64,000 nt of DNA, taken from positions 64,046,001 through 64,110,000 of the forward strand of contig NC_087246.1 of assembly GCF_037042905.1 (NCBI RefSeq), in the 5' to 3' direction. This document shows positions 13,201 through 59,276 of this stretch, piece after piece. Both the position numbers and the translations under genes were made by a program. Below the pieces are notes generated by a model, which did no database searches, was not told the DNA's origin, and worked only from the letters and a program-made list of their open reading frames with translations. How positions within the stretch are numbered: position 1 is the stretch's first letter; each line of letters opens with the position of its first letter. Source of the stretch: Lytechinus pictus. Lineage: Eukaryota.

Positions 13201-16200
13201 GCTGTCATTTCAAAAACTTAACCTCAGGTTAAGATTTGGTGTTGACGCCGCCGCCGCCGTCGCCGTCGGAAAAGCGGCGCCTATAGTCTCACTCTGCTAT
13301 GCAGGTGAGACAAAAATGAAGATGTTGAGTATGCATGTATTTGTTTGATCCTATGATTAAATCTCAGTGTAGTATGATGACCACATCAGGTAAAACTAAA
13401 GCTATTGATGCCATACCCTAACTCCCCTCACCCATGCCTCAAGACGATAGAAGGGCCGGTGTGAAAAGCACCTCGGGAATGATAATTTACACAGTAATCC
13501 TCATTAACAGCCAATATTTGTATAGTATTGAATCTGGGTGCACTGCAAGAATACCAGCTTAAAGGGATGGTCCGGGCTGAAAATATTTATATCTTAATAC
13601 ATAGAGTAGAATTCACTGCGCAAAATGAAGAAAATTTGATCAAAATCAGATAACAAATAATAAAGTTATTGAAGTTTAAAGTTTAGCAATATTTTGTGAA
13701 AACAGTCGTCATGAATATTCATTAGGTGGGCTGATGATGTCACATCCCCACTTTCCGTTTTCTTATGTTATTACATAAAATCATAAATTTTTCATTATTT
13801 CATACTTGTGTGAATAATATGTCTCCCTTATAATGAAAGGAGTTGCAGCAATAAATATCTAATGTACTAAATCAGTTGTCAATCCAATTTTTCTAGTTCT
13901 TGGAGGAAACATTTTGAATAAACCTAATTTCATATAATAAAATACAAAAGAACAAGTGGGGATGTGACATCATCAGCCCACCTAATGAATATTCATGACG
14001 ATTGTTTTCACAAAATATTGCTAAACTTTAATATTCAATAACTTTGTTATTTGTTATCCGATTTTGATGAAATTTTCGGCATTTTGCTCAGTGAATTCTA
14101 CTCTATTTATCAAGCTATAAATACTTTCAGCCCTGACCATCCCTTTAATGTCCAAAGTTATACATCTATTGATTAGTGTCTTGTAATTCTGTTAATTTTA
14201 AATTTAGCTGAGGGCTCATATTACCCATCTGACCCATTTGACAAATTAAATAATAATGTGGGTCTGTCTCACAAATTGACCAATCAGATTACAAAATTCA
14301 TGGAAAAAATTGTCCCAATAAGAGATAAACAACATCATACACATCTGTTATAAATCTATTTTAATGTTGTGCAATCAAGTGATTGTAATCAGTTCTTTTT
14401 TTTATAATTATCTTTACCATGCTTGTATGAATTCTATGTACCCCCCCTCCAAACTCTGGATGTAAATCAATGAAGCACTACAATATTTCATTTTAACTCA
14501 AATTGCAGATTTACCACTAAATATTTTTGAAGTCTCCCCAATTTTATGAATTCATATATTTGTTACCCAATATCATAAACTGCAATCTACAGTATTATAC
14601 TACCTTTATACACATTATATGATCTCATTAATAGTCATCATCATGGTTTCTTACATTCTAATGAATTTTGAATTTACAATATTCTATTTTGATTTGAATA
14701 TTAACTTCAAAAATGTATTTGCATTCAATGTATGATTTATATATCTGTTTCATTTTTTTTTCATATTTCAAATTCAAACCCCTATACTGACCTGATCATC
14801 CCAGTGAAGACACCTTACTACTCCTTTATGAGTTCCTTTCAATGAATGTACAAAATGAAGTCTATCTCTTCCAACAGTTAGAAGATGCAAGTCACCGCTG
14901 TAACCAACAAACAACAGAATTTATGATAAATTTTACCTGAAATCGATAGGATATCAATCATAGCATCGCAGCATTTGTTACATCAAATGCATGTACGTAA
15001 ACTGACAAATAAAATGCTAAAAAAATCATTGGTGATTTATGTTTGTAGTGATTATCCTCATTCATCTAACATATTTTTGGGTTGGATTGATGTGTTTGTC
15101 AGATTCATCATTTTACACTCATCATTAAGAAAGTTTCAAACACTAGAAAAAAGTGTCATTCAGAAAGTCTAGACCACATGAACATGCACATGCAAAATGT
15201 TTTTTCCCCTTTTTTTAGTCCCTAATGACATGGTAATATTTTTCATTTTAACTGTAAAGGATATGTAACTGAGTCCAGTTAAGTCTTCATTCTTGTTCCC
15301 CTTCTAGTACTTCTCAAGGATCACAATCAATCAAGAAAATATTCTTTCATTTTCACATAAAAAGATGTAAAATATTGTCAAAATGTCCCATATGGTGCAG
15401 CATGGAATTGCTCTAATGTATGTGTACTTTACCGATGTGTAAGAATATGAATAAATATTTACATAAAGAGAAGAAAACATAGGATGAAAAAATTCTACCA
15501 AATGGATCCAACATTTTACCTTACTGTTCCTCCTAGAACTACTAATGACTTAAGACCAGAATGATAGAAACAATCAACCAGATAGTCCACCTTACATAGA
15601 TCCTCCTGTACAGAAAAACAAACAAATGATTCAACAAGGCAACCAACTGATTAATGCTTTATAAATAGTGCAAAAACAAGTTATGCTTTTTCATGCATTC
15701 TTTCACCCAGACCAAGGGTAAAACAAAAATTCTGCCAAGGTAAATCAAATCCAGAATTCCATGTAGAGACATCAGTATTATAAGGTATGATCACGCAGCA
15801 AAGTAATTCTTTTTTAAAGAGATAAAACTAAAATTACAGGATGCTTCACAATAAACAACATATAAACATAATTTATAATGAACAAATAAATGATTACTGC
15901 AACCATTCCCAAACACGTTGCAAAGAGTATCAAGGATTTGGAGAGAATTCTAAGAAAGAGTTGATTACAGTTTATAAAATTCTGGCTCCAGGGAGGAGGG
16001 GGGTACCATATCTAAATATGCCATGGGCTAATATGCACTTTCAAGATCTCTTGCATGGCTTCTTTGATAATTGTAGAATCTACACACATTTACTTACCTT
16101 TAATGATTCCCTTACTGAGTCAAATTTGGTAATTTCTGACGACTGGGAAAAAGAATAGGAAAATTAACAATACTGAAAATACATACATTACATAAACATA

Positions 16201-19200
16201 TGGAAATGAATAGTGTTATTAAATTCAAGTAGTAATGAACTTTTTAACCCATTAACTATGGCCAGTCCTGCAGGTTATCATTTCTCATTTAAAAAAACAA
16301 TCATTCCAAAAGAGCATCTGGAAGTACCAAGGTCTATCCCATGGCCTGATATAAATAAAGATATGATGAGAGAGAGAGAGAAAGAGGGATAAAGACAATT
16401 TGAATAGATCAAATATAATTTCAATGGAGAGATAGTGTGAGAGAGTTTTTTTGTCTTTCCTTTCTCATTCCTTCTTCATTATCTTTTATTTTGTTCATGT
16501 ATTCATTTATTTATGAATCTATATCCATTCTTTATTTTGAATTAATCAATTTGATAATTTAGTATAAATCTAGTATCTAACTGCTTTAATAATTTTTTCA
16601 CCATTATTTATCTTTTCGGGCAATGAGGAGAACATAACTGTGATCATGAAATTTAACAATATGTATATGACGTAAGTAATACACAATAATCATTAAAAAA
16701 ACAATTGCACAAAAATACAAAGTTGACAAATTCAAATCCATTTGACCATGAAATTAAAAAAAAAATTTTGAGATTCTAATTTCTATGAATATTTACCTCA
16801 ACAGCATCAAATATTCTGATGGTTTCCGTATGAGTTAAGCAGTAGAGATATTCACTATTTGTTCCACACCAATCAATATGGCTCTGTTATGATCAAATCA
16901 TAATCAAAATCATTACAATCATTATTACAATCATCACAACAGCAAAAAAATGTAGGTTCCTAAACCAGCTAGTTATACACGTATGTAACATGTGCAGCAT
17001 TGCAATCTAGGCTAAACAGTGATGTATTAATGAAAGAATTTCCGCTGAAATCAGGCCCCCTTCCAACTTTTGACAACACTGATTCTTTGGGGCTTCATCA
17101 GAGTAAACTCAATTTTTTCTCCCTACAGAATTCTTGCTTTTGTTATTTCTTTTTCTTCCTTTACTGTAATCCTTCTTTATGCCTGCCCTTTAGGATGTCC
17201 CCTGAAAGTTGGGCAGGGGGGGGGGGGGACATGCTCCCCTGTCCCCCTAACACCACTGACTAAAATGTCTTGATAGAATAAAAATTAGAGCCCGTCTATG
17301 GCATCGACCTATCCATAAAGGTCACATTTATTGCATACAACCTACCCATGACTAATATTTGCAATTCACATTTATTAGATACAATAACTCATTGGAGGAT
17401 ACTACAAGGTTCCAGGCACTTTACACAGTCATACCAATCGATTTGAAATTCATCACAATAAACAACCTCCCGTACAGGCAGCTTTATTAGAAATCTTCCC
17501 TGATAACTGGCAAGAAGGAAGGCTACTTTGACACTCACAGTCTTGCCTATGACAAACTCCATGTCTTATGAACAATGTATGTTTCTTATACTAAAATAAT
17601 TTCAATATTTCAAATTTTAATCATTATTTCAGAGGGGTGTTTTGCTTACAATCGGTTTATTTGTACTGAAAAAAGGTAAAAGGTTGAGCTTCTATTTTTT
17701 CATTTTGAATCATAAAAAAATTATCCTAGTTTTATTTCCTGATAAATGCACATTAGTAAATTACTGTACAATGTTTCAGTAAAAATAATGTATTCTTGCA
17801 TTATTGCAAAATCCTTTGTATGAGGATAGTCAAGGCTCCACATTAACTTTTTATGGTGGTGGCCCATTCGGGCCACCAAAACCTTCAAATAATTTTTTTT
17901 GGTGGCCCGATATTAAAGTTTGGTGGCCCGAAAAATATAAAGAAAAACATTAAAAATTAATAAATGGGTATAAATGGTTTAACCACTGTAAAAAAAATGA
18001 AAGAAAATAATAAAACGGCAAAAAAAGTGAGAAAATTCCTTCCCTAAATTTGCCAAAATGTTGGAAAAATTCACATTTCATATTAATGAAATGCCTTCCC
18101 AAAGTATTTACTTTCTCAAGAGTTGTTTAAGAAGTCATTTATAAACAAGAAAGAAAGTAACTGTCTGTTTATTTTTGGCTAGAAAAGACTGGAAAAGACA
18201 CAGCTTCGAAAGAAACCAAGTAACAACATACATACAAATGCACATGTGGGACTGTAATGTACTCACTTATGTGTTTTTATGTGTATTATTTTCATTTGGA
18301 AATCGGTCTTTTTGAGTCAAAAGAGAGGTCATGATTCCTCTTTTTAATGCTTGCAAATAATCAGGATACACCAGATATTAGCAAAAAGGTCTGTAGAAGG
18401 GCATTTAATTGGTGTAAAATGTGACTTTGACTTGGATTTTCACAGTTCTGTGGAAGATTTCTTAGCAGCAACATTTCGTATTGCAGCTCCCTGAGTCTGA
18501 ATAGGCTGCTAACGCACAGCTGCTTCAAGCATGCAAAGCTCACGCCAGCCGGCCGGCGCGGCTGGCTGGATAAAAGCTACGTAATGCTATAGCGGTAGGC
18601 CAACTTTGTGTGTGTGTTTGTGTGTAGATCAACAAAAAGGGCGCATGACGAACTGGCTTGCAATTTGAACTGTAGAAAGTTGATAAATGCGTGCAAAATG
18701 GGGAGAAAAATTGCGCTATTCTGAAAATTATTGGTTGCCCGATTCGGGCCACCAAAACTTAATATTTTTTCAATAATGGTTGCCCGAGGTGAATTTCTGG
18801 TGGCCCCGGGCCACCGGGCCACCGCTAATGTCGAGCCTTGGGATAGTGAATGTTCAAATAGAATGGAATGAGAATAAAAATCTCAAGTATGGTTTTTCCA
18901 TATACACAAGGAAATTGGAATGGAATTGGATTGACTATTCATAGCTATAGTAAGACTAAAGTAACATACCACTGATGATTCAGCGTTGAGCGTCGTCACA
19001 AGGGCATCTTCCTCATTCGTTTGACTCGTATCAAACACACAGACAAGCCCATCGGTTGATCCTGTGGCTAAACTTGATGATTTGGTGGGGTGAAATTTGA
19101 CCTGAAGAAATAAAATTATTGCATTAAACCAAAATCATATTTATCTCCTATTAAAGTAACCTTGCACGACAAGCCTTTAACTTCAAATGTTTCTAGGGCA

Positions 19201-22200
19201 AGGGCAATTCATATGGTGTACATTATTTTACAGCACAAGTGGGAGATATTATAAAACCTGGCTCACACCTTTGTGTTTGGGGCTTGTGTTCAGCTGGGTA
19301 TTGCATGAACGCAACATGCAGTAAAACGAAACACAACGCAATGGAACAAGCTAATACAAGGTAAATAAGCAGACTAACAAAGAGGCCTTGCGTTCTAGCT
19401 CGTTAGTTTGACACTTTGCAAACATCCGCAAAAGAACCCAACCTAAATTCATACGAGCAAAAGACGAGTGGCAAAAATGAGCAAATGTGAGCAAGAGCGA
19501 GTGGCCAAGACACATATTAGCACCACGTTAGTGCTCGATTTACCACGAATTACCTTGTTTTAGCTCGCTTTTAATACTGTACGCAACTTTATCCGAGATC
19601 TGATGAGCTTGTAGGCAAAAGTGTGATTGCAACCAAATATTTAGCTGCATAGTATGCTGAGTCAATACACAGTTTAGAATGCAAAGGTGTAAGCCAGGCT
19701 TAAAGATCAAGTCCACCCCAGATAAATGTTGAATCAAAACAGAAAAAACAAACAAGCATAACGCTGAAAATTTCATCAAATTCAGATGTAAAATAAGAGA
19801 GTTATGACATTTTAAAGTGTTGCTTATTTTTTCACAAATCAGTTATATGCACAACTCAGTGATATGCAAATGAGAGAGTCGATGATGTCTCTCATTCACT
19901 ATTTTTTGTTTTTTATTGTTTGAATTATACAATATTTCAATTTTCACAGGTTTGACAATATAATGACCAATGTGACTGAACCATAAAACGTTGAAAATTT
20001 TATGGTAATTCCACAGTTTCAGGGAGGAAATAAAATTTGGAGAAAAATTTGAAAAGTTCAAATTTAATATAATGAACAACAAAAGAAATAGTGAGTGGAT
20101 GATGTCATCAGACGCCTCATTTGCATACAGACCGGAAAAAAACTTTTTGTGAAATTAAGCGAAACTTCAAATATCATAACCTTTTTATTCTACATCTGAT
20201 TTTGATGAAATTTTCAGTGTTATGCTTGTTGGGTTTTTCTCTCTTATTCAAGTAAACTTTTTGTTGGGATGGACTTGACCTTTAATTGACACAAAATGGT
20301 TTTAAGAGCAATAAGAAGTGCACTGACTGAGAGCAGATAACAAGGCATCCATTAATTAAGTCACTAGTAGCCTGGATTAATTCAAGTCCAGATAATCTAC
20401 TATCTACAACTAAATCTACATCAGACTTAAAATTAGTTTGCTTGTCTACCCTGCTAGATGATATATATTCCAATTTCCAGGGGGATCCCCTTGAAAACTG
20501 AATGCTCTCCTCCTCATCCCCCAATCTAAATATCAACTGATTATTTCAATTTAAATGATTCTACATGCATGCAAGATCTTAAACAATATAAAATTGGGGG
20601 GGGGGGGTCATTTTAAAATGGTGTATAACTAAGCCCCCACCCCTCCTAATCCTGAAATCGAGAAATATCAGCTGATAATTACAATGACTTTACATGTATA
20701 CAAGGTATTCAACAACATAAAGATGGGGAGGGGGGGGGGGAGTCCCTTTAAAATGGTGTAACTATGCCCCCGCCCCACACTAATCTGGAAATAAGATCAG
20801 CCAATAATTACAATTTAAATGACTTTACATGTTTACAAGGTGATCACAGACATAAAGACGCACTAGTACACAAAGGTACACAAAGCATCTAATCACCATT
20901 TAACACATGTCTATCATTAGACTTGAATGGCCAGATGCTTAACACGTTGAATGTGTGAATAATTTATTAGAATATATCATATTCATAAGATAAGATAATA
21001 GACGTGTGCTGGGAGATGGACGTCATCATCGACAGCAATGGGCTTATTTTGTGAACCATCGGAATCATCGTCACACAATAGTAACACTGAATGCATGCAT
21101 AAATCATACAGAGGAAGAATGAAGAGAATTTGTTTTTTTTTAATAACAAAAGCTGCATCAAGGATTCATGTAATAACAGACTTAGTTGAGGTAGGAAAAA
21201 ATGTATACTTAATGAATAACAAATCATCAGAGAGAAGAAGAGCAGACAAGAAAAGGGAGGATTAGAAATTAAACAGAAAATTTCTTCTATATAATATGCT
21301 ACCACAGAGCAGAATGAAAAGATGTTTTTGTTCTCCTTCCCTCTAAATTACTCTACAATTTGTAATACCTTTATCATTTCTAAGCAGGGGAAATACATGT
21401 AGATGTAAAAAAAACAGACACTGAAAAAGTTTATATCTACACAATAATACACAACAAAAATATGTTAAAAAACAAAATACTTTCAACAAATTACTCCATT
21501 ATATATGCATACATTGGTTTACCTGTTTTATGACAAAAGGATTGTTCTGCCCATATTGAATGAAAAAGAAGGTGTTTGCAATTAAAAATATGATTTTGAA
21601 ATATCATTGGATAATTATGACTCTAGTCATATTTTCATGATACCTTATACAATATCTTATTACAATCAAGCACTCAGCCTTGTAAAATACAATTTTTTAT
21701 TACCACAAATTCTAACAAATCATGTGCATAATATATTACCAAATGTTTCACATGCTTTCATCAATGCATTACTGGGCCGCACAATTGCAAACTTCAACAC
21801 CAACAAATAATTAAATTTCACACTACTTTGTTTGCTCATCTTTCAGAATCATTAGAATAAAATGAATGAAACCTTCTAATCTAGTATCCCCTCCTTGCAT
21901 GTAATCCCTCCACAGATGCATAGGATTGGCATTCATTGTCTGAACTTTATCCCATCTTAGAATTTATTATTTTCTATAAAAGTTGGAATTTAGATGAAAT
22001 AAAATGGACAATATATTCATAGGAATTAGTTCACACTTAAAAAAAAAATCAATGCCAGCTATGATCTTTCTCACTGGACATACATGGCAAAAATATACCA
22101 AAGACTTCATTCAAAGTCAGTTTATAATATACATGTACATATTATCCCTTCCCTTCATTTCACCACAAAATTATTTATTAAACTCTTCCACATGCAACTA

Positions 22201-22359
22201 ATATTATCTGTTAAAGGGTAAATAAATTGACTATCAGCACTTCATAATATTTTGGAATAATGGCTTTACATAGTCAATGTTATCACAATACTAACCTGTG
22301 TAATATCATCTGAATGTGATTCCTTGTATGTACCAAGGAGATTTGTACTTCTCCTATCC
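10178..22359 (-). CDS. WDR89: WD repeat-containing protein 89 homolog, 3' eight coding exons (5'-partial)
   Basis: Hand-spliced exons 22359-22296, 19101-18970, 16883-16797, 16142-16098, 15605-15520, 14897-14792, 11790-11635 and 10252-10178. All are GT-AG and phase-compatible. Translation: (W)DRRSTNLLGTYKESHSDDITQ|VKFHPTKSSSLATGSTDGLVCVFDTSQTNEEDALVTTLNAESSV|SHIDWCGTNSEYLYCLTHTETIRIFDAVE|...|GTHKGVVRCLHWDDQ|TETLITGGEDSVVSSW...KPYSP*. The motifs ESHSDDITQVKFHP, GSTDGLV.VFD, YCLTH.E, DYLVD and TGGED are recognisable WDR89-family signatures. Confidence 0.93.
11635..11790 (-). CDS. WDR89: WDR89 exon TETLITGGED...GSPVK
   Basis: 156 nt, tag/gtaa boundaries, TGGED motif. Confidence 0.9.
11851..12281. 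mobile_element. MITE, PIF/Harbinger-like
   Basis: TIR ggcaccgttctca...tgagaacggtgtc, with TAA on both sides (3-bp TSD). Confidence 0.75.
12370..13316 (-). mobile_element. Non-autonomous Helentron/HINE-like (DINE-1/pearl-type) element with internal tandem repeats
   Basis: Subterminal inverted repeat gtctcacctgcat/atgcaggtgagac, several ~150-190-bp tgacctttgacc-containing units, and T-run ends on the minus strand. The same family recurs at 35078-35769 and 38250-38416. Confidence 0.7.
13563..14144. mobile_element. Palindromic MITE, TTAA-flanked (Kolobok-like)
   Basis: ttaa|agggatggtccgggctgaaa...tttcagccctgaccatccct|ttaa, with inverted arms of ~190 bp. Confidence 0.85.
14792..14897 (-). CDS. 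WDR89: WDR89 exon GDLHLL...HKGVVRCLHWDDQ
   Basis: 106 nt, cag/gtcag boundaries, start of a WD40 GH-type repeat. Confidence 0.9.
15520..15605 (-). CDS. WDR89: WDR89 exon EDLCKVDYLVDC...GGTV
   Basis: 86 nt. It ends in phase 2, matching the next exon. Confidence 0.87.
16098..16142 (-). CDS. WDR89: WDR89 exon SSEITKFDSVRESLK
   Basis: 45 nt, cag/gtaag boundaries, in frame. Confidence 0.8.
16797..16883 (-). CDS. WDR89: WDR89 exon SHIDW...FDAVE
   Basis: 87 nt, cag/gtaa boundaries, phase 0-0. Confidence 0.9.
17831..18840. mobile_element. Non-autonomous hAT-like DNA transposon
   Basis: TIR caaggctc...gagccttg, subterminal ggtggcccg/gggccacc repeats, and ggatagt duplicated on both flanks (7 bp visible; hAT normally 8). 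Confidence 0.75.
18970..19101 (-). CDS. WDR89: WDR89 exon VKFHP...AESSV
   Basis: 132 nt, cag/gtatg boundaries, WD40 repeat motif GSTDGLVCVFD. Confidence 0.92.
19704..20281. mobile_element. TTAA-flanked MITE (Kolobok-like), family aggNcaagtccacccc
   Basis: ttaa|agatcaagtccacccc...gggatggacttgacct|ttaa. Other copies are at 37822-38245, 60785-61376 and 62615-63213. Confidence 0.85.
22296..22359 (-). CDS. WDR89: WDR89 internal exon (W)DRRSTNLLGTYKESHSDDITQ; most 5' exon found in the window
   Basis: cag acceptor at 22362-22360 and gttag donor at 22295-22291. It begins in phase 2, so an upstream exon is required. Confidence 0.9.
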
Positions 22360-22558
22360 CTGTAAATCAAACAAAATAGGAAGCAAAATATTTTTTCATA
22401 AACAAGGCATTATAAATGACAATTTTCTTAGGATATCAACAATTTATTTCATTGCAAATATCAAAAGATAAAAGGAAAAAAATACCCAGACTACTAATGA
22501 GTCAAATTCAGACACCCAAATTATACGATAAGCACAAAAACAAATTGAAAAGTAATTT

Positions 22559-22760
22559 TAATAATAATAATAATAATAACAATAATAATGTGACTTATAA
22601 AGCGCCAAATCCACTCTGTAGAGTGCTCAAGGCGCGTAAAGAGCTAAGAGTTAAAGTTTTTAGAAGATTTTTGAAAGTCCTGACAGAGGTACATTTTGTT
22701 ATGTCTTCAGGAAGGATATTCACAAGGTGGGTCATGCAAAAGCAAATGATCCTCCCCCCA
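22559..22760 (-). mobile_element. 3' end of an L2/CR1-clade LINE with (ATT)n tail
   Basis: Minus strand reads NILPEDITKCTSVRTFKNLLKT (ORF2 end), then the tail stem-loop gcgccttgagcac...ggatttggcgctttataa and an (att)n microsatellite. Confidence 0.7.
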
Positions 22761-23047
22761 GTTTTTAAAACTTTTGGAATAATAATAGATAATGTTGAAA
22801 ATGATACACTTCCACTCTAATCAGAAACTGAAGTCATATCAGTCTGCTTTTCAAAACAAGCTTCTGTTATAATGTACATGTATGTTTCTGTGACAGAAAG
22901 CTTTGTGACTGCTAATGTGATTCAAACTGTTTTTAAAAATTGACTGCACATAATGTAATCAATCATAAATAGTATTACAATCAATTACAAGGCTTTGTGT
23001 TATGAGGCCTTGAAATCTAAACATTTTACAGATTGATACAGCCCCTG

Positions 23048-23192
23048 GGGCCCGTTGCAGAAAGAGTTGCGTTTAAACGCAAGCCAAAAAATCAATCCCA
23101 AGTCTTAAATGCATGCTGATGATTGGTTAAAAATCAAGTTGCGAATGATTTTTAGAGTTGCGATTGATTGCAACTCTTTCTGTATCAGGCCC
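23048..23192. mobile_element. Short palindromic MITE
   Basis: ggggcccgttgcagaaagagttgc...gcaactctttctgtatcaggcccc, flanked by ctg on both sides. Confidence 0.65.
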
Positions 23193-24133
23193 CTGGTTTG
23201 CTTCCCACAAAATGCATGCAATCAGCAAAGGATTTCCTTGCTATTGTGACTTGATAATCCGGCTCCAACGGCAACCCTGGCAAGCGGAACCCAAGACATG
23301 TTATGAATAATTAGGGTTTTTGTGATCCGAGTTAGATGTGGAAGAAGTACAAATAGAATGTGAAATACTAGGAGATGTCTCCACGGAGGAGTGGGATTAG
23401 ATATTATCAACACACAGATAGAGTTTCTGAGACAATTCTGATTAATCATGATGAGGATGGTCGGGAGAAAATAAGGATAAATCACAGATGAGAGAGAGGG
23501 GGAACACATGGAAGAGGTGGTGGGGGGGGGGGTCATTACATCTCAAACCTAATTAAAATTGATCATAATGAGAATAGTAGGCAGAGAAGAGGGATAAAGC
23601 AAAGCACAAGATGGATTGAGCAAGGGAGGGATGGAGGGATGGGTGTGTGAAAGAGAGAAGAGAATTAGAAGGGGCAAGGGAAAATGTGCATGGGGTGGTA
23701 GTAGTGATGGGAAAAAATGTAAAAGCAGTGTGTGAGAGAGAGAGAGAGAGAGAGAGAAAGAAGGGGTTGCTGGGGGAAGAAAAACTCAGATATATTCATT
23801 AGAAAGACCAAATGAAATGAGGTGAATATGAAAGAAAGATAATTTAGATTTGATACACATACTTGCAGAAAAAAGATAATGGGATAAAGAACATAAATTT
23901 GAAAGCTTATGTACTGTAGAATGAAAAAAAATTTCAAAAACACATTTGAAAATTTTGTGGTATCCGCATGATCACATCATTAAATGAAGGCTGGATTCAT
24001 TTATTATAATTTTTTTTAATTAGATGTTGCCAAAGATTTTGTAGGATTTTGATGAATATATTTCCATTTCTACTATTGATCATGATGTGGAGTGAGTAAA
24101 CATGTAGGTGGGAGATAGAGAGAGGGATTTTGT

Positions 24134-24298
24134 AGTATGGGCCTATTTTCCAGAGTGTGGGTCAGAAGTGTGGGCCAAACTTTTGAAAGTGTGGGCCATT
24201 TTGCGAAGTATGGGCCAAATTCATGGGCCCATACTTCTACCCCTGAAGTGTGGGCCATTTTTGGCCATTTGGCCCAAACTCTAGGGGAAGTATGGGCC
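24134..24298 (+). repeat. Left subterminal array of AGTRTGGGCC motifs
   Basis: Forward copies at ~24134, 24154, 24167, 24188, 24207, 24247 and 24289. Inverted copies at ~24226 and ~24271. Confidence 0.9.
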
Positions 24299-24343
24299 AA
24301 AATTTCATGAGAAAGGGTCATTTACCAGTCTCGAATGCGAAAA

Positions 24344-24390
24344 TGAATAAATGAATGAAAGAATGAGTGACTGAATGAATGAATGAATGA
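24344..24390 (+). repeat. (GAAT)n microsatellite just inside the element's left end
   Basis: gaataaatgaatgaaagaatgagtgactgaatgaatgaatgaatga. Confidence 0.8.
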
Positions 24391-24533
24391 CGGTTCCTAT
24401 CTGAGAGAGCATGCGCAAACAATGTGCATGTTTTTCATTGCACGTGCTTATTTTGCATTAGCCAACTACAAGTACAGTACGGTATACGATTACGACTAAA
24501 CTAAGTTACGACCAGTTCCAAGCTCAAAAAATT

Positions 24534-24584
24534 ATGGCAGACCGAGACGACGACGACATCGAGGCTATGTTGGCTGATCCTCTT
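24534..24584 (+). CDS. YR exon 1 MADRDDDDIEAMLADPL
   Basis: ATG in attATGG context about 400 bp inside the left end, in a CpG-richer region. gtaagt donor, phase 0, matching exon 2. Confidence 0.7.
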
Positions 24585-27500
24585 GTAAGTAGATTGGAAT
24601 TGTCTTAAATTTTTGCCTATGATTTATTGAGAGTCTTTATATTAAGGGCCTTCGATCGGACTAAGTTAGTCCTGGCCCTTGGCTAAGTTTAGTCAGACCT
24701 GCGGTACCGTAGTCCAGCGGGCTGGGGCTGGGACGGGTTAACGGTAAAGACGTTGACGACTTTAACTTAAACTTAAAGTCACTCGCACCGCGGAAGGCTG
24801 AATGGGGGTCAACGTAAACGTCCTCTTTTTATTCGTTTAAAACTTAAAGTTTTCTTTGAGGCAATATTTGGATACCACTTGAAAATGATCATCTTCTAGA
24901 ATCTAGTTCTACCACTACCAGCAAAAATTGGTACTTTCTTGAAAAGTTGAATAATTCTTCACCTTTTTTTGGAAGTCAATTAAAACTGATTATCCATCAT
25001 TGATGAGACTTGGGCTGAGTTCCAAATAGGCCTAGTCAATGCTTGGGCTTCATTGCATAATCTTAGTCTTTATTGAGGTCTAAATTTCATTTTTATTACC
25101 TTGTCTGTATGGTATATCAATGCAGGTTTCATGACATTTTCATAATAATATGGTCAGTTTCCCCATGACATGTCTGCGCAGTCTCCCAAATCTGCGCACC
25201 CGCGTATCTGCGCGATTTCTAGTAAAACTTAAAAGAAGATACGCAATGAGCATGAACTTTGCAGTACACATGCAATATAGACAGGTATTCATAAAAAATT
25301 CGACTCAAAATGGTGGAAAAATAATGAATTCAGGGCATTTCATGTGACGGCCTCAAAATGCAGCGTTTGTCATCAAAATCCCTGAATCGTGTGCAAAGTG
25401 AATGAGTGCGCAGACAAGGGGTAGGCCTAGCCCTAGGCCTAATAGCCTACCATTTTTTTTCAATCTGAAAATGACTGCCCGAGGTTTTTTCAAGGAAATC
25501 TTATATTTTCTTTCATTTTTTAATGAGAATTTGGTACATTTACTCTTTATAATATAAGGAACACTATTAACCAAAAGATTTTGTGAAATAAGAAGAAATT
25601 CATGTTAAATCTTAACTCAAATTGTTACGTGCGCAGACTTGGGGCCCACCATCATACTGCTGATTGATATTTTTCTGGTAAAATTAGGGCTGAGAAACCC
25701 AAGCTAACAAGCTACATGTACATGTCTTTTGTTTTGGAAATTTATGTCATAATTTATGCATAACTCCAGGCAAGCCTAGGTCGGCTGTGTGCCTGTTAAT
25801 TTGGTTGTGTTTAATTCGATATGTGTGTTGGATACATACAGAGTATAGCGCTGTGCTTCTTTGTCGCGATTTGGGACTGACGAACCAAAGTTAATCAAGG
25901 AAATGTCTCTTTTGGCAAAATGTATGTGTATATTTGTATAACTTATATTTAAGTCATGATTTTGATACCAGATGGTAGAAAAGATGCCTTAGACTATTGA
26001 TGTTAGATGTAGTAATTAATAGGTATGTCTAATTTTATTTGTATGTCTATAAATGCAATGATTAATGCTATAATTTATTCAGTGTTTCCATTGACACAAA
26101 GTAACACTCTAGTGTTTCTTTGGCACTCGACTAGTTTGGTTAGTGCTCCTTTGGCATATGTTGTGACTCTTTGGCACTAGTCTGGTTCAGTGTTATATTG
26201 ACACAAGTGAAGCATTTATTCGGATTGAGTTCAGTTTGGTAACTCTAGTGCCAGTGAAATAGTGAATGATATATGAATATTTATGACAGAACTGTAAAAT
26301 GAATTATGATTCTTGTGCTCATATTTGATTAGATATATTGTATTTATGTTTTTCTCAATGGTCACTTGTAAGAAGTAATGTTTGGAAAGGTCAACCTACA
26401 TTTGGACCAAGCAATTTTGTGCTTTACAGCATGTTAAAATTCTTGTTGAAATAAAATGAGATGCAGTACAGGTCGTTGAGCAGACTGACAACTGTCTCAA
26501 ATGCAGCTGTGTTCTCGTCTAGCCTTTTCCAGCATTGCTTCCGTGACATTTGGAAATTATGTATGACTTTGGTGAAGTTATTGATGATTGTGTGGGTTAT
26601 ATGTTTATTTATAAAGGACCAGTTCCAGGTTCAAAAGATGAATTTTTGAGGAAGAGGCTTCAGGCCTCAGTTACTTAAAAATGCCACTAGTGTCTCATTG
26701 GGAGGCATTTTTTTTTAGTTAGGCATTCTTTTAGTTAGGAATTCTTTTATACAGTAGTTAGTTAATTCCAAGTCAGTTATTCGCTCAGTTAAGCATCTAA
26801 ATTTGAATGCATCCAATATTTTATAGGACAAGAACAGCAACTATTTTTTATATTTGAATCAAGTGATTTTGCTCCTTGTGTAAATAGGATGTAGTTTTAA
26901 GGAGTGCTTTACATGTATATAGGCTGAAACTTGTCAGTTTGGCAAACACTTTTACTTTCATTCATGCTCTCTACAATTTCTAGCTATTCACTCTAATATA
27001 AGCACTCAAGCGTAGAACCAGTTAGGGTTAGGAAGTTAGTAAATTTCATTATTAGTCAAAGCAACTGAAAGTTTGAGATTGATTAGTTCAGGCACTGAAG
27101 TACAGATTGCAAGAAATGAATTCTTAGATATGCAGGATGTCTTGATTTAAAGTACGTAAAGCCGAATAGAAAGTTCTGAAGTTGGCAATAAATAGGGATT
27201 AGTAATTTGAGGCTAATTTATTGTAGAGACTAGGGTAGTAGTCCATGGTTAGCCAGGAGAGAGTTAACATGTAGACGAGGGGTGGAGAGACCCGTTAGTA
27301 AAATTCCCGTTGAGTGGTAGCATAATGTAGGTATTGATATTTCTCACTGCTAGAAGATAGTTGATTTGAGTTGGCTCGAATTTGGACTGGAAATATTTTG
27401 TAGGTGGCTAATAGGAAGCCTATGTAGAATTGAATGGAGACCAGGAAGGCCCAGTATAGAACTACTGTTTAGGTTTAGTTGGAAAGACAAGATAAATTTG

Positions 27501-30500
27501 GTCGAATTGACTTCAATTGTTTTAACTTTACATTACATGAATTACCTCACTTATGTCTGATAGAATAAAACCCATAAAACTGAGCTAGCTTAATTACAGG
27601 TAGATTAGTAGATTTATATATTTAGAAGTAATTTACAGGATACCTGTACTAGATAGCACTAATAAGATGTAAATTTGTACATATAGGAAAGATGAATTAT
27701 TACAAGTAACTGATTTGATACCATAGTTGTACGTGCCAAATGCATTGTACAATGCTTTTTATTTATGGAATTTCTTGGCTTGATTGCCATATTGTTGGAA
27801 AGAACAGTTAATAAAGTTATTTGTTACTTGTTTACTTTAACGATTTTGCTTGATTGATTCATTCTTTAAAATGTCTGGTCACATGCTAGTCACTATGGTA
27901 GTTATTAAATTAGTACTTCAACATCTCATTTAGATAGTAAATCAGAAAAATCATAGAACGGAATCATTGTTTAGTTGTTATGCTAGACGCTTAACCATGT
28001 CATTGTGCCTTAGATTGCTTGCTACCGTATAGGAGAACCGTAACATATAGTACATGTGATGAGAATCTGCCCCAGTTAGAAGTTGTGTGTGATAGCTCGA
28101 GTTTAGTTGTGCTAGCTTAGACACTAGTGGATAGCGTTGCATGTAGTTTGTGATGCTATGTGGAGTTGGTGAATCAAAGAAGTTTGATTGATTGTGCACG
28201 TTTTAGTGCATGAGATTAGTAGTTAAAATCATTTCAAAAGTGTTCTTAAAATGTTTATTAGGTGGTCTGTCGATGACAGATCACCTCTTGATTTCACCAG
28301 AATTTTCTTTCTTTATTCTTTATTTATTTTTATTTCTTCCGTAAACTTTTTTGTACACACGTTCACTCGAAATCGACATGGTCAATTTCCTTCAAATTTC
28401 TGTCAGTCATCAAGCCCTATGATTTCAAGTTAAATCAACTTTTTCAAGGTCATCAGGTCATCGCGACGTCATCCAGGCGCCATTTTGTAAAAATCAGGTC
28501 ATTATCATATCTCAATAACGAGTCATCAAAATTCAACTATATTTGGTATACATCAACTTCAGGTCAACGGTCAACTAAAAATTTCATCAATTCCGCGCGC
28601 GCACCTCGACGCGCATTAAAATTTTAAAATGCTCAAATTCGTTCCACATTAATTTTCCATACGTTTTAGGCCATTTTAAGCATTTTGCAAAAAACGCGCG
28701 CGCACACACATGCGCGCGCGTGTTCGCGCGTAATTGCATCTTCCAACATAGAATCGCCAAATTTGTTTATATCAATGCATCAATAATATAATTCTGAACA
28801 ATTTGATACCTTGATCAACCAACCTTCTACGACAAGTAATAACAAAATTATCACCCGTTAAACTTTGCAGCATGTGTGCGCGCGAGCTCTCACTACAGGC
28901 CATATATGGGCAAAAACATGTCTATTGAAAATTCACTGTAGCTCTTTAAAATAGTCCGTTGACCCAAATTTTTTTTTCATATATCGATAGAGTATGAGTT
29001 GTAGATTTGATTTCATGTCACCATTGCCCCTCAATTTGATCATGACGTCATCAAAATTGCGCCTAAACTGAAAATTTCATTTTTTCAAAAATGACGTCAT
29101 CAAATTTATGCAAATTTGATCATAACTCTGTGAATATTGATCATTTTTCGCCCAGATTTTGATGTGTTGTAGTTTAGAATGTACTCTTTCTCGTCAATTC
29201 CATGGATTTTTATTTTGAAAAACGCATCATGGTGTAAAATTGCGATGAAAAGAGGCATGTCATTTTTCCTCATATTACGTGTAATCTCTATGGGACATGA
29301 CTTTTTCTCAAAAGTAGATTCTACATTCGTCTATTTCGTGAGATATATCTCCATTTTTTCTTGTTAGTTATCCCTGAGCTTTTGATATGATGTAGCTGAG
29401 ATTCTAAGTTTTCGGAAGTGTGCCCTCCATTTTTCGATCAGATGCCAGGATCATACCCGTTTTTCGCCAGGATCATGCCCGTTTTTCGCTTGCAAAATTG
29501 GATTTGTAATTCTCAAATTTGCTTACGTCTAATCTCTATGGGAACGTGTAATCTCTATGGGGATTATCGTGGCTCAATGGATAATGCCCTTGACTTGAGT
29601 TCTCGGGGGCGCAGGTTCGAGTCCTGGGGGTGAACAAGATGATTTTTTTTTTCATTTTTTTGTCTTTTTACCACCTCGTACATGATCCTTTATGATAATT
29701 AAAAGGTATGAAAGTTGAAATTTAGCAAGATTAAACAGATTATAATTTTTTCATATCACATGTATTTTCATATATCAAAGAGACCCTTTTCACAGTGCTT
29801 TATCATCTCCCGTCTTTCACAAGTATTCCATCCATAATGATTAATGAACATTCCGTTGTCATCATGAAGATCATATTGATCTGCTTGAACATGGTAATAG
29901 TGATCATGATGGCGAGAATAAGGACAGACCACCTAATTCGTCCGCATGACGAATTAAAATCTAGTTTATAATTAGTTGTTAACTCATCGATATTGTTGCG
30001 AAGTGCAAGTTTGTTGTGACACATGAGCCTTGAATTTAGAGATGTTCTGCATGCACTGGTGTCGAGTTTAAGTGAGCATGAATGTTTATGATTTCTAGGG
30101 TGTCGGGGTCAGAGGTGACCAATTAGAAGTTGTGGTGATTGTGACATGTTGAATTTGTGTGCCAATGCGCTTACAGCAATTTGTGAATGATTAAGGCATT
30201 TAAATTACAATGTTGTTGTTGTTATGGGCCAGTGAAGCTGGCCCATGACGCTCTTTTAAAGTTCAGATGGTGGCAGCGTACTTTGTGGAGAATGGTTGAT
30301 GATAATTGGTGGCAGAGTATGATAGGAATTTTCAACATATTTTCCATTCTTTATTTTCTCTCTTGTTTCTTTCTTCTTTCTCAATCGTTTACTCTATCAT
30401 TCTATCTTTATCCTTGATTTCTCCATCATTCATTTTTTCTATTTTTCATTTCTTACTCGATCTTCTCTTTATCTGTTTCCCATCTTGTTTCACAAAACCC

Positions 30501-33500
30501 CTCTCTTTTTCCTCTTACCCGCCTTCCCCTCTATCTTCTATTTTCGCCGCAATAATTCATTGCTTTAAAAATAACAATTAGTCTAGACTAAAGTTAGAGG
30601 AAATACAATCAAGAAACATTCTCACTCGCTATTCCAAATATTACATAAATTATTTCATATTTACTAACCGTTTTCTTTGCATTGGGCTTGAAGCATACCC
30701 TTCCGCAAAAAACAATTATTTTCTTGAGTGACAAATAACATCATGATTCCGGACGCTCGCCGGACGGGTGAAGATGTTCTTGATTAATGATGTAATTAAG
30801 AATTGGGGTGTTTTTTTCTTCATATGTCATATCGTGAGTAAATTCTAAATTTTTTCATATCAAGTCTGAACAAAGTTTGGAAATATTATTTAATAATTTG
30901 TGTGTGCTAACTAATCTTCATTTTTGTCTTATTAGCTGCATGTTCCATGGCTTTTTTTCCAATATTTTGCTAGTTCCTTAGCATTACACAAATAAAGTTT
31001 GTTACGATAATAGTCTTGTTTAAACACCAGCTCGGAATCTATATATGTCCACACCAGAGAAGTGTTAAAACAACACCAGTTTGGAATCAAACCAATGCTG
31101 TTTTGATACTTCTTGGTGTTGTATAAACACATATTTGGCGTGAGGCCAAAAACCAAACTGGTGTTGTTTAACATTTCTCTGGTGTGGACATATATAGATT
31201 CCGGGCTGGTGTTGAATCAACAATTCAGTTTTTGCAGTGTAGCCCGGCGACATGTGCACGCTTCCCTTGCTTGCCTTTCCAATACAGGAATTTTTCAGCA
31301 ACTATTTTCTGAACTTGCTACTAGATGGTATATTGGAGCACTTGTGGTCGCATGTGGATCTTCTGAATAATGAAGAGTTAATTTCTCTTATTTTTTAACC
31401 ATCAGGTGCAGGCACATGGGCACGATGTCACCAGAATGCTGGCTTATAGCATAAGGCCAAAAGTATACTTCAGCCACATGCAAAAAGGTGGGTCCTTTGA
31501 AGAATTGCTAAATGAATTACAAAGGAAGGAATCTGAGGAAAGCCAGCAAGGAGCAGGCCAAGGGATAGTTCCAAGGGATAGTGATGATGATCATGATGGC
31601 GATGATGGCGATGATGGTGGTGATTATGAAGAGGAAGAGGAACTACTATATGAATTACAAAGGAAGGAATCTGAGGAAAGTCAACAAGAAGCAGGCCAAG
31701 GGATAGTTCCAAGGGATAGTGATGATGATCATGATGGCGATGATGGTGATGACTATGAAGAAGAAGAGGAAGAAGAGGAAGAGGAACTACTATATGAATT
31801 ACAAAGGAAGGAATCTGAGGAAAGTCAACAAGAAGCAGGCCAAGGGATAGTTCCAAGGGATAGTGATGATGACGATGACGATGATGAAGAAGAACTCTGG
31901 ACATTGCAGGAGGAAGATGAAAGAGGATATTCCAGTGAAGATGGACAGGAAGAGGAAGCTGTGGAGGAAATTAAAAAAGGTCAGTACTCTGTTAATAATT
32001 CCTTAAATCATTAACCCTATTGTTTCTGAAACTTTATTAGTAAAAGCTTGTGTTCACATAACACCAATATTGAAGAGATGAGATTAGTAGCAATCGAAGG
32101 TTACTGATAATCCCCACTTAAAACATCCATTTATAAATGCTTTCAAGCCTCTATTATGTTTTGAGTGTCTGCATTCAGAATACATGAAATCGCACTCAAA
32201 TACAACTCGATAAACGATAACCCAAACTATACAGTCCAACCTCTTATTTGGCCTCCCTTTATCAGGATCTCTCTAATATCCGAATGCAATCTTCCTGTGA
32301 TTTTCCCTAGTTTACTCAAATAATTACTGGGAAAACAAAGATTTCAAGCATAATCATTATTACTAAAAAAAATGTGAATTATATATTATTCCGAACATCT
32401 GTAATAAACATTCAGATGAACTTTCATGTTGATAACATGCTTTCAGACACCTTAGACCCATGCAACTGCATGTATTAAACATAGAGTCTCCCATATTCAG
32501 GTAGAAATAGGATGCGAAGTGATGTGGGTGACATGAATTCACAGTATTACATGGTAGTACAAGGTGTCCAGTATCCAGTAGAACCATGCTCGTAGTGAGC
32601 ATGGCGAATTCGCTCAAGAAAACATGACCTGACAAAAAAAATGTGTAGAAGGTTAATTCATTATCTTTTGTTTGCCAGCAGATGGGAAAATTAATTGTGT
32701 TATACATTCAAAGGTATAGAATTAAGATTTTGAATAAATACTTACATGTATAATAATAATGTGTTTTCTGTTTATTTATGTACTAAGGAACGAAAAGGAA
32801 GCAAGGACAAGATGGGAAAAAGGCGTCCAAACCAGCAGGTAAACAATTTACACTGTATATTTGTACATGTATACAGCAATGATTTGAAATGTAGAGGATA
32901 TGTTCAATGATATCCTGCTGTCAGGTGCAACTTCTTGTACATAGGACAGTCAGTCCACCTTATTGAGCAACAAAGTGTCTTGGCATGCATTTGTGTTGCT
33001 GGGGTACGATAGCATGAATTCTATATAGTTCACAGTGGTAGGCAGTCTGCTTCACGAATGAGTCCGGAACTTTGGTGAGTGACTAGTCCCTGAAAGATCA
33101 GTCATGCAACACAACATCTTGGCCTTGTTGCATAGAACTCTATAACTAGAGATAAATTTTAACTGGAGATTTTTTATCATTATTTTGGGGGTTTTGTGTT
33201 CAAGTCAAAAGTCAAAATATGTAATTTTAGTCCTCAATTGTCACCAATTGTACCGGTTTTATGCAATGGCCCTTGACAGAATGTAAACATGTATGGACCC
33301 CAAGTCAATTCAATTCAGGTTTACAAAAAAACATGATTGACAGTCAAAACTGGTTTTAATGTGGATTGGAGATGAGTTTGTGAAATGGAATGGACCTGTA
33401 AATGCGAGCTGTAAACCGAAGATGACAGATGATCATACTCCTTCATGAAATATCAAGAAATATATATATATATCTAGTTTAATTTGAACCATTCCATCAT

Positions 33501-36500
33501 TTTCACTGTTGATATGACAAATAATCATGTTTTCAAATATTTCATACTGAATTATAGAATTGAAAGTTGTAGAATTTATCCTTTTTCAGAAGTTAGTGTG
33601 CCACTGATACACCCTCACTTCCCCTCATACTCCCCAACATACATGCACAAAATAGATATACTCTATTAATCATTTTATCCCTCGAGATTAGAAAAAAATA
33701 ATAATAGGCCTACACTGGTAGAAATTTTCCTATAAGAGTCTTGTAGGCCTATTTGGTTAAGGAAGACCTATACTCATGATTCATTTTTTAAAATGTCCTA
33801 CCTTTATATTCCCTATCCCTTTAGTTACATTTATTTAGTAATACTATTATTCACCCTACATGCAGATCGAATCGAGCGAAATTGCCCACTTTGTAATGTT
33901 GCGACAAGAACGCTTGCCCGGCATCTTCGCCGCAAGCATACACAGCTGAAGGAAAACGAGATCTGGCATTTCATATATCAAGCCAGAGAACGGTGAGTAT
34001 AGTTCTTTACTCACCCATTGCCTCCAAGATTATCTGAATTTCATAGGTTTAACACAGGGACTACCCAGTTCCTGTAACCAATAGATTAAACTCTTTGCAA
34101 GTTTTGTTTGTAATTTTGTACAAGTGGCATGAAAATCATTGACAGGAAGTGTCGCTGTTATTCCAGAACTGAACAATAAAAAAAATCAATATTCTATTTC
34201 ATTATGAAGAGAATTATAGGAGAATGGACAACTGAATGATGGAAATACAAAGCATTTTCACATTTGCACCTCATAATTGTGTTATAAAAGGTTATTGATA
34301 ATTGATAAGGTGTGATCATCTGCAGACTGCAGTTAGCAAATTTATACTTTCTAAAGATTGAAAATATGCATGGATATATTAAGTATTTGAAATCAAATTT
34401 CAAAATCCCTGCATTCTGGTCATATAAAACTCGGAATTGCTTTCATGAACTGGTATTAAACCAACATGTTATAAAATAAAAGCTATGGGAATCATGTGTT
34501 CAGAGAAATTCTTATTTCTTACAGTGTGAGTATATGATGTAATATACATGTGACATACTTCTTCTATTTTTTAGAGTCCCAATTCAGAGGAAGAAAACCA
34601 GAGATGAAGGACGAGAGAGAACTGGACAGAACTGTCCCCTTTGCGCCGCAAAAGGATTAACCAAACTCTCAGACCATATGAAGAGGAAACATAATGGCCA
34701 CACAGTGGAAAAACAAGGTACTTTGAATAATTTTGTCAAAGCAATCTCATGGGGTAAGCCATTTATCACATTTAAACTATAAAAAAAATCCAACAACAGA
34801 AAATCAGGCATAAGAATTTTATATTCTTGCAAAAGTGGATTTATTACACATTTGTAGTTGATCATATAGGAAAAGGTATGCAATTAGTCATAAAGGTAAT
34901 AATCTCCCCCCTGCACACATATACACTACCAGCATGATGTTTCTGGTGTAGTAATTTGTAATGGCTTATTGTGAATAAACATTGCAATGATTTATTTTGA
35001 AAAAGTAATATTTTCCACTTCGAGATTAAGAATCCTGTCCATCTGTGTTTCCAATAATGGCTTCATCAAAGTTTGTATTTTTGTCTCACCTGTGAAGCAG
35101 AGTGAGACTATTGGCGCCACTTTTCCGGCGGCGGCGTCAACACCAAATCTTAACCGAAGGTTAAGTTTTTGAAATGACAGCATAACTTAAAAAGTATATG
35201 GACCTAGTTCATGAAACTTGGCCATAAGGTTAATCAAGTATACTGAACATCCTACCTGAGTTTTGAGTCACATGACCAAGGTCAAAGGTCATTTAGGGTC
35301 AATGAACTTAGACCATGTTGAGGGAATCAACATCAAAATCTTAACCTACATGTAAGGTTAAGTTTTTGAAATGTCATCATAACTTAAAAAGTATATGGAC
35401 CTAGTTCATGAAACTTGAACATAAGATTAATCAATTATTGCTGAACATCCTGCTTGAGTTTTGAGTCACATGACCAAGGTCAAAGGTCATTTAGGGTCAA
35501 TTAACTTTGGCCAAATAGGGGGTATATGTTGAATTACCATCATAGCTTAGAAAGTTTATTGGTCTAGTTCATAAAACTTGGACATAAGAGTAATCAAGAT
35601 TCACTGAACATCCTTTGCGCATTTCAGGTCACATGACCAAGGTCAAAGGTCAATTAACTTTGGCCATGTGGGGGGTATCTGTTGAATTATCATTATAACT
35701 TTGTATTTTTATGGATCTGATTCATGAAACTTGGACATAAGAGTAACCAAGTATCACTGAACATCTTGTTTAAATTTAGACCCCAGGGTTTAGATTCTAG
35801 ACCACTAACGTCAGACTCTAGATCTAAGAGTCTAGATTCTAGATCTAGAAAAGTCTATATCTAGAGTCTAGCTCTAGAGCTCTCACGTTATGGTGGTGGT
35901 CTCCAAGTCTGTTAACGATTGGAGTTAAGATTTTAATATGAATTCTAGATCTATCTATTTATTTCATAAATTCTTTCAGTTGCATAATGTTTTATTTTGT
36001 TAGACCTCTAGATCTAGACTCTAGATCTATATTCCAGATCCAGACTAAAGTCCTATCTCATAAAAATTTAAAAGAAATAGATCTAGAGTAGACCTAGGCC
36101 TATAGGTCTAGATCTAGGCCTAACGTAGGTCTCTACAAATCTATCTGCGTCGTTGTGCCGCCGCTTAAGGTTTTTCCACAAACTATTTTAATCCGTAGAT
36201 CTACATAATTATGGTAGTCCTATATACTTAGACTCTACCTTTGTCATCACGAAAATTGGCCGATAGTGATTGCAATGGTCAAGATTGACCACCAATGGCA
36301 TTTCCCAGTCGGCGACCTCCCTGTCTCGGGTGCGCGGTACGATGTACGATTCCTTTGTCTATCGCATATACTTGACCATAATACTGAAAATAAAATAATT
36401 GCCAGAGTAGATCAGGCTTTAATTATTCCGGCAAAGATACCAATACCACTGAGTGAAAACAACTTCTCCAAGAACCACTGTACTGAAAAGTGACCTTTGT

Positions 36501-53425: not shown

Positions 53426-53875
53426 GATCAACCCCGCTTGGCCAGGTAATCCCCACAGGCCAGATTATGAGCGTTGAGCCAAGAACGAAATGATAAACAA
53501 CAGCTGTGCTATTACGTAAGTCTTCTCTGCCTGTAGAAGGACCTTCGGAATTAAATAATTGTATTCGATATTTAATCACGTTTTCAAAGGCATATTGTAT
53601 TCAGAAAGTTAATGCTAGCCCATTTTCAATTTCGAACGAAGAAAATCAACCTTGAAATAAGGAAAGTAAGTGAATAAAAAATGGCGACATGTTTTCCAGG
53701 ACCGCACTCGGGCTGTTGTGTTATCTTCGGACCGAGGTAAAGAAATAGGTGTTTTGATACTTACATTGCATGCTTTGGGCAGTAGGGTTTTCGTACTTGA
53801 AGAGAATTCATTGAGAAAATCCGGGGTATAGTGTTATCAAAAGGAGGTTTTTCGTCATGAGTTTGAGAACATTGA

Positions 53876-59042: not shown

Positions 59043-59276
59043 AGAGGGGGAGAGAGGGAGGGAGAGAGAGAGAAATAGAAGGGAAAGAGAGACATTTATT
59101 TCTAATCTCATTATAGAATATGATTACCTATTTTGGAAGCAATGAAGCATCAAGCATGTCATACTATGGTCTGGTAAGCACATGATAAAAAGGTCACCCA
59201 CTTATTCATGTTTTGATGAATTACACAGGTCAAAGCAAGGAAAATGACTTTTGATCTATACTGCATGATCATATTA

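Follow-up and report, generated by a model that had tools for sequence, protein, structure and literature searches.

The copies of a short motif, AGTRTGGG(C/A)C, that cluster at two places in a 64-kb stretch of Lytechinus pictus DNA (64,000 nucleotides, hereafter the window) are best explained, with a probability of about 0.72 on the basis of sequence comparison, as the cis-acting ends of a Crypton-like tyrosine recombinase (YR) DNA transposon that inserts into (GA)n microsatellites. The two clusters form the two ends of a 34.9-kb intron-rich element at about 24127-59042, which lies within a GA-rich tract. Comparison with S. purpuratus establishes that the arrays are end-specific conserved cis elements and that the element is mobile, targets (GA)n, and has a YR as its only gene. 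The asymmetry between a dense left and a dispersed right array is a conserved property and not an accident of the copy in the window. A preliminary description of this DNA had treated both clusters as terminal arrays of one recombinase-encoding system, and this is borne out by the presence of the same arrays at the tips of three S. purpuratus copies of a YR-encoding mobile element; their co-occurrence at element ends in four insertions contradicts the alternative that the clusters belong to unrelated repeat families.

A pattern scan allowing at most one mismatch to AGTRTGGGMC finds nine copies at the left end within 24134-24298 (165 bp), in agreement with the nine or so copies in 170 bp noted earlier. 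Seven of these are on the plus strand and two (24226 and 24271) on the minus strand; sites L1 to L9 lie at 24134+, 24154+, 24167+, 24188+, 24207+, 24226-, 24247+, 24271-, and 24289+, with offsets of 7, 27, 40, 61, 80, 99-, 120, 144-, and 162 from the left end. At the right end, the earlier count of about six inverted copies over ~1 kb is reproduced for five copies at the same threshold, all on the minus strand (R6 at 58068, R5 at 58099, R4 at 58309, R3 at 58517, and R1 at 59024), and reaches six only with a copy that carries two mismatches (R2 at 58925-58934, reverse complement AGTGTGGGTA); the right array spans 58068-59033, and the offsets of R6 to R1 from the right end are 965, 934, 724, 516, 109, and 9. 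The density is thus 9 sites in 165 bp at the left vs 6 sites in 970 bp at the right, with spacings of ~13 and 20-21 bp (about one to two helical turns) in the left array and of hundreds of base pairs between right copies. The sequence around the copies gives a longer consensus, G-R-A-AGTRTGGGMC-A, frequently followed by a T run. The enrichment of the motif over background, which the preliminary description had proposed as a check, is evident within the window, where 19 matches occur vs 2.8 +/- 1.6 in dinucleotide-shuffled sequence (none of 100 shuffles having as many), and both zones stand far above the window's own background (Poisson P of 9e-22 in 200 bp at the left and 6e-8 in 1000 bp at the right), the six scattered matches outside both zones (62.8 kb) corresponding to the background rate.

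The outermost copies lie next to the junctions of the element with a purine tract. The left flank (24110-24126) is the end of a GA-rich purine tract, the target microsatellite, and the left junction is placed at about 24126/24127, the purine run stopping at 24127 and the S. purpuratus copies meeting (GA)n at the same point; on the right, the GA-rich purine tract resumes at 59043-59092, and AGAGGG is present at both junctions. The GG-N5-G-W arrangement reported at the two tips can be read in the letters (left GG ATTTT GT AGTATGGG, right, strand-reversed, GG CAAAA GA AGTATGGG), and the N5 spacers differ between the ends as described (ATTTT vs CAAAA), but the equal distance of the outermost site from a terminal GG, literal in the window, is not conserved in S. 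purpuratus. With the purine tract as the reference point, the outermost sites have distances of 6 nt (left) and 9 nt (right) in the window and of 6 and 10 nt in S. purpuratus, so that an equal distance depends on where the boundary is set. Inside the right junction, a conserved non-coding terminal block of ~500 bp (58540-59042) can be aligned with S. purpuratus, unlike the introns (67% identity by blastn across 387 bp; 60-67% across ~500 bp); stops in all six frames and the lack of codon periodicity identify it as conserved non-coding DNA, and it includes a nearly invariant block of 32 nt between R2 and R1 (58941-58972, CGTGTACAAAAYAAATGGGCGGA..TAACGCG).

The window sequence is AT-rich and animal-like, with GT..AG introns, and the length of the element in it is inflated by nested retrotransposon fragments and other repeats. 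Translations judged by eye show apurinic-type endonuclease-like ORFs, as in non-LTR retrotransposons, at 44530-45443 (-) and 47519-48012 (-), nested in introns of the recombinase gene; the S. purpuratus copies lack them. Outside the element, at 12369-13256, lies a tandem repeat of ~160-bp period, which recurs inverted inside the element at 35126-35809 and 38302-38417 (80-96% complementary), as an unrelated repeat family inserted into an intron. The 3' non-coding part of the element contains a near-perfect palindrome of 214 nt (53868-54297, 96% complementary, 2-nt loop) and a perfect tandem duplication of 194 nt (55692-56079). An ORF with a WD40-like stretch (GSTDGLVCVFD) at 18886-19134 (-), 5 kb to the left of the element, is probably a host-gene exon. 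Sequencing reads from runs X1, X2, and X5 were placed on 22000-27900 in one comparison; they show no loose ends, joints, or depth step at the element boundary, and no extra copies, empty sites, or circle junction were seen among them, so that one copy is seen in the species of the window. A Logan contig of run X2 (1140 nt, 24120-25259, no mismatch) begins exactly at the element boundary, 24120, its first letters being those of the genomic junction and not of a circle junction; X1 and X2 cover intron 1 (25630-27900) and none of the unique left flank (23379-24119), and contain ~0.55 of the junction-query words, which is the element part.

The protein of the element has, as judged from alignment and a structural model, a YR fold in which the catalytic R, K, R, H, and Y are all present. 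Its exons in the window are on the plus strand. A putative exon 1 (24527-24578), recognized from the sequence by an ATG and an acidic stretch followed by gtaagt, begins 400 bp from the left end, compared with 490 bp for exon 1 in S. purpuratus; run X5 has no RNA reads on it, and exon 1 is therefore kept as putative. The exon 2 region (31406-31549), found by tblastn of the S. purpuratus protein P0002 and in the ORF list, is followed by acidic repeats to about 32011. Two finger exons with the pattern CPLC-x12-H-x4-H follow at 33883-33993 (finger 1, from the ORFs, with weak C2H2-type hints only from Pfam and a homologous exon in S. purpuratus copy L003) and 34633-34779 (finger 2, the better conserved of the two between genera). 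Alignment and tblastn place the first catalytic arginine (GAPRS) in the exon at 43609-43770, the lysine (HKT) and second arginine (SIRK) at 48264-48527, the region used as the phmmer query, and the histidine and tyrosine nucleophile (MCH...HYY) at 49170-49385; the C-terminal tail is formed by two exons (50862-50996 and 52387-52485) that are 62-67% identical to S. purpuratus. Frame-shifted extra copies of the start of the catalytic exon (HDHKTSSSFGR...) occur at 45883-46321 and 46489-46627, upstream of the intact exon (48252), and a stray motif match at 46156 (-) falls within one of them.

The family is rare, with 13 phmmer matches to the catalytic exon among 1.84 billion representatives, the best full-length match being S. 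purpuratus LOC100892106 (P0002). A protein-homologue search with P0002, whole or as region 165-400, returned only P0002 itself and one fragment; for the whole protein, the best 8000 candidates by word sharing were scored, and the long acidic stretch may have dominated this selection. Pfam gave nothing significant for ten window exons and no family at E <= 0.1 for P0002, and a distant fish relative (P0012) matches Pfam Phage_integrase at 4.6e-10. A family profile searched against the PDB gives weak matches to integrase and XerA chains. Similarly, the best Foldseek matches of an AlphaFold model of P0002:150-420 (pLDDT 79, pTM 0.74) are tyrosine recombinases only (XerH, XerA, Cre, Tn1549 Int, and IntI). 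The catalytic R, K (HKT), R (IR), H (MCH), and Y align in the window exons and in the relatives; conservation in this YR family does not extend to the H of the classical HxxR box. The family is also present, with a similar finger, in a sea cucumber and in fishes.

The 90% cluster of P0002 contains two more S. purpuratus gene products on other scaffolds, and the three loci (L001, L003, and L004, on scaffolds AAGJ06000014, AAGJ06000011, and AAGJ06000007) were compared. The copies are 99.1-99.2% (L001 vs L003) and 95.4% (L001 vs L004) identical from end to end; at either end the homology stops within (GA)n, and the flanking sequences of the copies are unrelated. All left tips read (GA)n|TTTGGT-AGTATGGGAC and all right tips GTCCCACACT-TTCTCGCCCG|(GA)n, and 7 left and 4 right sites are present at identical offsets in the three copies. 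GA or purine tracts of variable length flank all four insertions (three in S. purpuratus and that in the window). The host site of L001 is an intron of a PARN-like gene, and that of L004 is the purine tract of one monomer in a 105-bp satellite. Intact satellite monomers have a purine tract with a median of 15 nt (n=67), and the interrupted monomer has 17 + 22 nt (39 nt), as expected if the element imports its own GA tract in a conservative crossover. The satellite surrounds the copy at L004:1-3689 and 16690-22935, and each ~105-bp monomer has AGTGTGGGAA, one mismatch from the motif, ~30 nt upstream of its own GA tract and ~58 nt downstream of the previous one; by a rough estimate, a chance match in a given monomer has a probability of roughly 2%, and AGTGTGGGAA might act as a pseudo-site favouring insertion there.

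The largest S. purpuratus copy is L003 (16.2 kb), and the other two, of 12.3 and 12.9 kb, are internal-deletion derivatives. The finger exons (L003:5896 and 6361) and the exons of the N-terminal domain are retained in L003 only (one of the three copies), and the annotated 504-aa XP_030840177 is the product of a deletion derivative in which the acidic region is joined straight to the catalytic domain. Each S. purpuratus copy has one annotated gene, and all ORFs of L003 are 125 aa or shorter; no reverse transcriptase was found, as judged from the ORF lengths and annotated genes of these copies. Other than the GA tracts at its flanks and the short motif, no direct or inverted repeat of at least 20 nt links the ends of L001. 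The window and S. purpuratus loci are unlikely to be orthologous, since neither blastn nor tblastx finds similarity between the flanks; the neighbours, a PARN-like gene at L001 vs a WD40-like exon in the window, also disfavour orthology.

The layout of the arrays is conserved between the two genera. In all three S. purpuratus copies, the left offsets are 6, 27, 40, 60, 91-, 119, and 133-, and the right offsets are 10, 99, 526, and 754, which gives 7 sites in 140 bp at the left vs 4 sites in 755 bp at the right. From the agreement of these offsets with those in the window, the outermost four sites at each end and both strand switches correspond between genera, though the introns no longer align and the recombinase exons have diverged to only about 45-60% identity (tblastn). 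Compared with S. purpuratus, the window has extra copies, two at the left (offsets 80 and 162) and two at the right. In the alignment of the left ends, the identity is 88% (44/50) in site columns vs 45% (39/86) in spacer columns (Fisher P 5e-7), a contrast to be read with the tendency of the aligner to match motif with motif. Conserved positions combined with diverged spacers are the pattern expected of cis-acting protein-binding sites.

The arrays are known from two lineages, with one genus each. The urchin motif was not found in the sea-cucumber (L005) and fish relatives, the fish locus L002 being too repetitive to read. A 2.6-kb unit in the sea cucumber (L005:4072-6698), 3.3 kb upstream of the homologous YR gene, has GTTATGGACGGAA on the plus strand at its left (4072, 4411, 4434, and 4454) with one minus copy at 4241, and six GTTATGGACGGAA copies on the minus strand at its right side (6137-6698); the core TATGGAC resembles the urchin motif, and the unit has no GA flank and no established tie to the YR gene. 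Metagenome matches to the L1-L2-L3 spacing pattern consisted of two contigs without homology to the element and were attributed to chance. Head-to-head motif pairs in the left array were also considered as loxP-like core sites and rejected, their spacers being unconserved (9 and 14 nt in the window vs 21 and 4 nt in S. purpuratus).

Three other explanations of the arrays have been weighed. Relative to the putative start codon, the left array is 230-390 bp upstream in the window (350-480 bp in S. purpuratus), a position that would suit a promoter or enhancer cluster bound by a host transcription factor for the recombinase gene, the right copies being incidental, and the X2 contigs that start at 24120 and cover the array and intron 1, with the flank uncovered, might reflect transcription from the end. 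This is unlikely in view of the inverted copies at conserved offsets at the far end, 12-35 kb away, and of outermost copies no more than 10 bp from the junction in four independent insertions; a promoter role is moreover compatible with transposon ends through autoregulation and is thus no true alternative for the whole pattern. The least probable explanation, to which we give very little credence, is a functionless, minisatellite-like local amplification kept by shared ancestry: slippage can amplify short motifs and the window has two extra copies per end relative to S. purpuratus, but the spacings are irregular and non-tandem, the orientation switches are conserved, and the motif columns have been kept while the spacers decayed to 45% identity and the introns of the same element ceased to align.

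Between these two in standing, and improbable as well, is the possibility that the arrays are subterminal repeats of a DDE transposon (CACTA, hAT, or P type) that carries the YR as cargo and takes its transposase from elsewhere. Dense subterminal arrays of a motif in two orientations are typical of En/Spm, Ac, and P elements, and GA on both sides could mask a short target-site duplication. The terminal inverted repeats and constant-length duplication of TIR (DDE) elements are nevertheless absent, the GA tracts being variable and the extreme tips unlike and not inverted repeats of one another (TTTGGT vs CGGGCGAGAA, the right tip reading ...CTCGCCCG), and no repeat of at least 20 nt links the ends. 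In addition, the GA tract of 39 nt at the satellite insertion, against the 15-nt median, is far above a duplication of 2-10 bp, and the sole gene in copies of 12-16 kb is the YR. YR elements that target repeats have themselves been documented (PMC8869645; PMC10871703).

If the arrays are the ends of a YR transposon, strand exchange would occur in the GA tract, from which L1 and R1, mutually inverted, are separated by 6-10 bp. As in the Goodwin model, the element would be excised as a circle with the junction R1 - about 10 nt - (GA)n - about 6 nt - L1; this junction would be the attachment site, recombining by strand exchange within any genomic (GA)n. The protein of the element itself would bind the motif, with L1 and R1 positioning the recombinase at the crossover and the other copies (8 more at the left in 165 bp and 3-5 more at the right at about 100, 520, 740, and 950 bp) serving as accessory sites that load extra recombinase, or its DNA-binding domain, into a higher-order complex. 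The spacer between L1 and R1 would then be at least 16 bp plus the GA tract, against an overlap of 6-8 bp in classical YR systems, and L1 and R1 may therefore not be the catalytic cores. The zinc fingers, of which finger 2 is well conserved between genera, are possible candidates for readers of the motif, and the arrays kept in two S. purpuratus copies that lack the finger exons imply only that the fingers would have to act in trans. With the putative exon 1 only 400 bp from the left end, the promoter must lie within or just past the left array. This array falls inside the 400-490 bp that separate the tip from the start codon, which makes it probable that its occupancy also regulates the promoter of the element, a form of autoregulation.

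The unlike layouts of the two arms would allow both ends, and the circle junction as well, to be told apart from a bare target, and a role of the arrays in the direction of the reaction (integration vs excision) is possible but speculative. It is a tentative and rather doubtful proposal that the YR transposon builds a lambda- or Tn7-like higher-order complex on asymmetric arrays of a single motif, both for the specific integration of a circular intermediate into (GA)n and for discrimination between integration and excision. If true, this would be the first eukaryotic "complex att site" and would offer a compact animal-derived integrase system with a simple and abundant genomic target.

Of the classes of eukaryotic DNA transposons, Cryptons are understood least; their ends have been described as nearly featureless, so that cis requirements are not known for them and reconstitution has not been achieved for any family. 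The exact ends, the (GA)n target, recent copies (99% identical), and conserved candidate binding sites are defined here, so that binding assays and assays of excision and integration can be designed directly. Should the arrays work as proposed, eukaryotic YR elements would use an accessory-site architecture like that of phage and bacterial systems.

The element falls within the operational definition of a Crypton (sensu Goodwin 2003; Kojima and Jurka 2011), as it has a YR with catalytic residues, no detected mark of DIRS, Ngaro, or VIPER (reverse transcriptase, LTR, ITR-plus-ICR, or split direct repeats), a short identity between end and target (GA on both sides in four insertions and AGAGGG at the window junctions), and, in S. 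purpuratus, three copies at unrelated loci. The YR domains of CryptonA match DUF3504 at E <= 8e-12 (PMC3212892), a mark of that group that is lacking here, DUF3504 giving no match for P0002, any relative, or the window exons. Microsatellite-specific insertion, found in all four insertions, is also reported for some cnidarian CryptonV families (Kapitonov and Jurka 2012, Repbase Reports 12:2034, cited by PMC8869645); compared by description, the likeness to Cryptons and CryptonV consists of a YR, no reverse transcriptase found, no long terminal repeats, and a short end-target identity. In contrast to the Cryptons so far described, multi-copy motif arrays are present at both ends here, in a conserved asymmetric layout: animal Cryptons were without terminal repeats in the study of Kojima and Jurka (PMC3212892), and the background section of a 2026 paper gives only direct repeats of 4-6 bp for Cryptons (PMC13465315). 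With published Crypton ends lacking arrays in PMC3212892 and in that section of PMC13465315, conserved asymmetric multi-site ends appear new for the class; microsatellite-specific YR transposons (CryptonV) are already known, and conserved asymmetric arrays appear to be undescribed. In Chlamydomonas, insertion of an active CryptonF was observed to proceed through recombination of a short sequence at its end with a target identical to it, which confirmed the Goodwin model (PMC9977147). Endogenous nimaviruses of crustaceans, according to the available text of PMC10871703, have multi-exon YR genes with a C2H2 finger and a SAM-like N-terminal domain and insert specifically into simple repeats ((TAACC)n) or 28S rDNA; the C2H2 zinc-binding domain is there among the typical parts of nimaviral YRs, termed arm-binding-domain-containing, and that text mentions no terminal arrays. 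A nimavirus, compared by description, is a giant viral genome, unlike the single-gene element of 12-16 kb considered here (35 kb in the window, with nested repeats).

Among prokaryotic systems, lambda attP, Tn916, and CTnDOT resemble the present element as YR systems with extra sites unequally spread over two arms, an arrangement that is also found here. Unequal arms of the lambda type build a higher-order complex, and attP, attB, attL, and attR are hence inequivalent. In lambda, the sequence of the arm-type sites is not that of the core-type sites, and recognition of the former involves an N-terminal domain dedicated to them, along with IHF, Xis, and Fis. The analogy to lambda arm-type sites drawn in the preliminary description fails in this strict form, as the same motif of 10-13 nt occupies both the crossover-proximal (L1 and R1) and the distal positions; unlike in lambda, a single motif is used throughout, and neither an excisionase nor sites for accessory factors are known here. 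The En/Spm (CACTA) elements have a roughly 12-bp subterminal motif bound by TnpA, in both orientations over a few hundred base pairs and overlapping the promoter, and this overlap couples transposition with autoregulation; unlike the present element, they use a DDE transposase, end in perfect terminal inverted repeats, and produce 3-bp duplications. Tn7 and Mu likewise have one motif repeated at each end, packed at one and spread at the other, with ends that are functionally unequal in those systems, but they use DDE transposases and produce target-site duplications, whereas a YR and recombination within a GA tract are indicated here. As analogies, the ends of Tn7 and Mu or the subterminal repeats of CACTA elements are at least as good as the arms of lambda.
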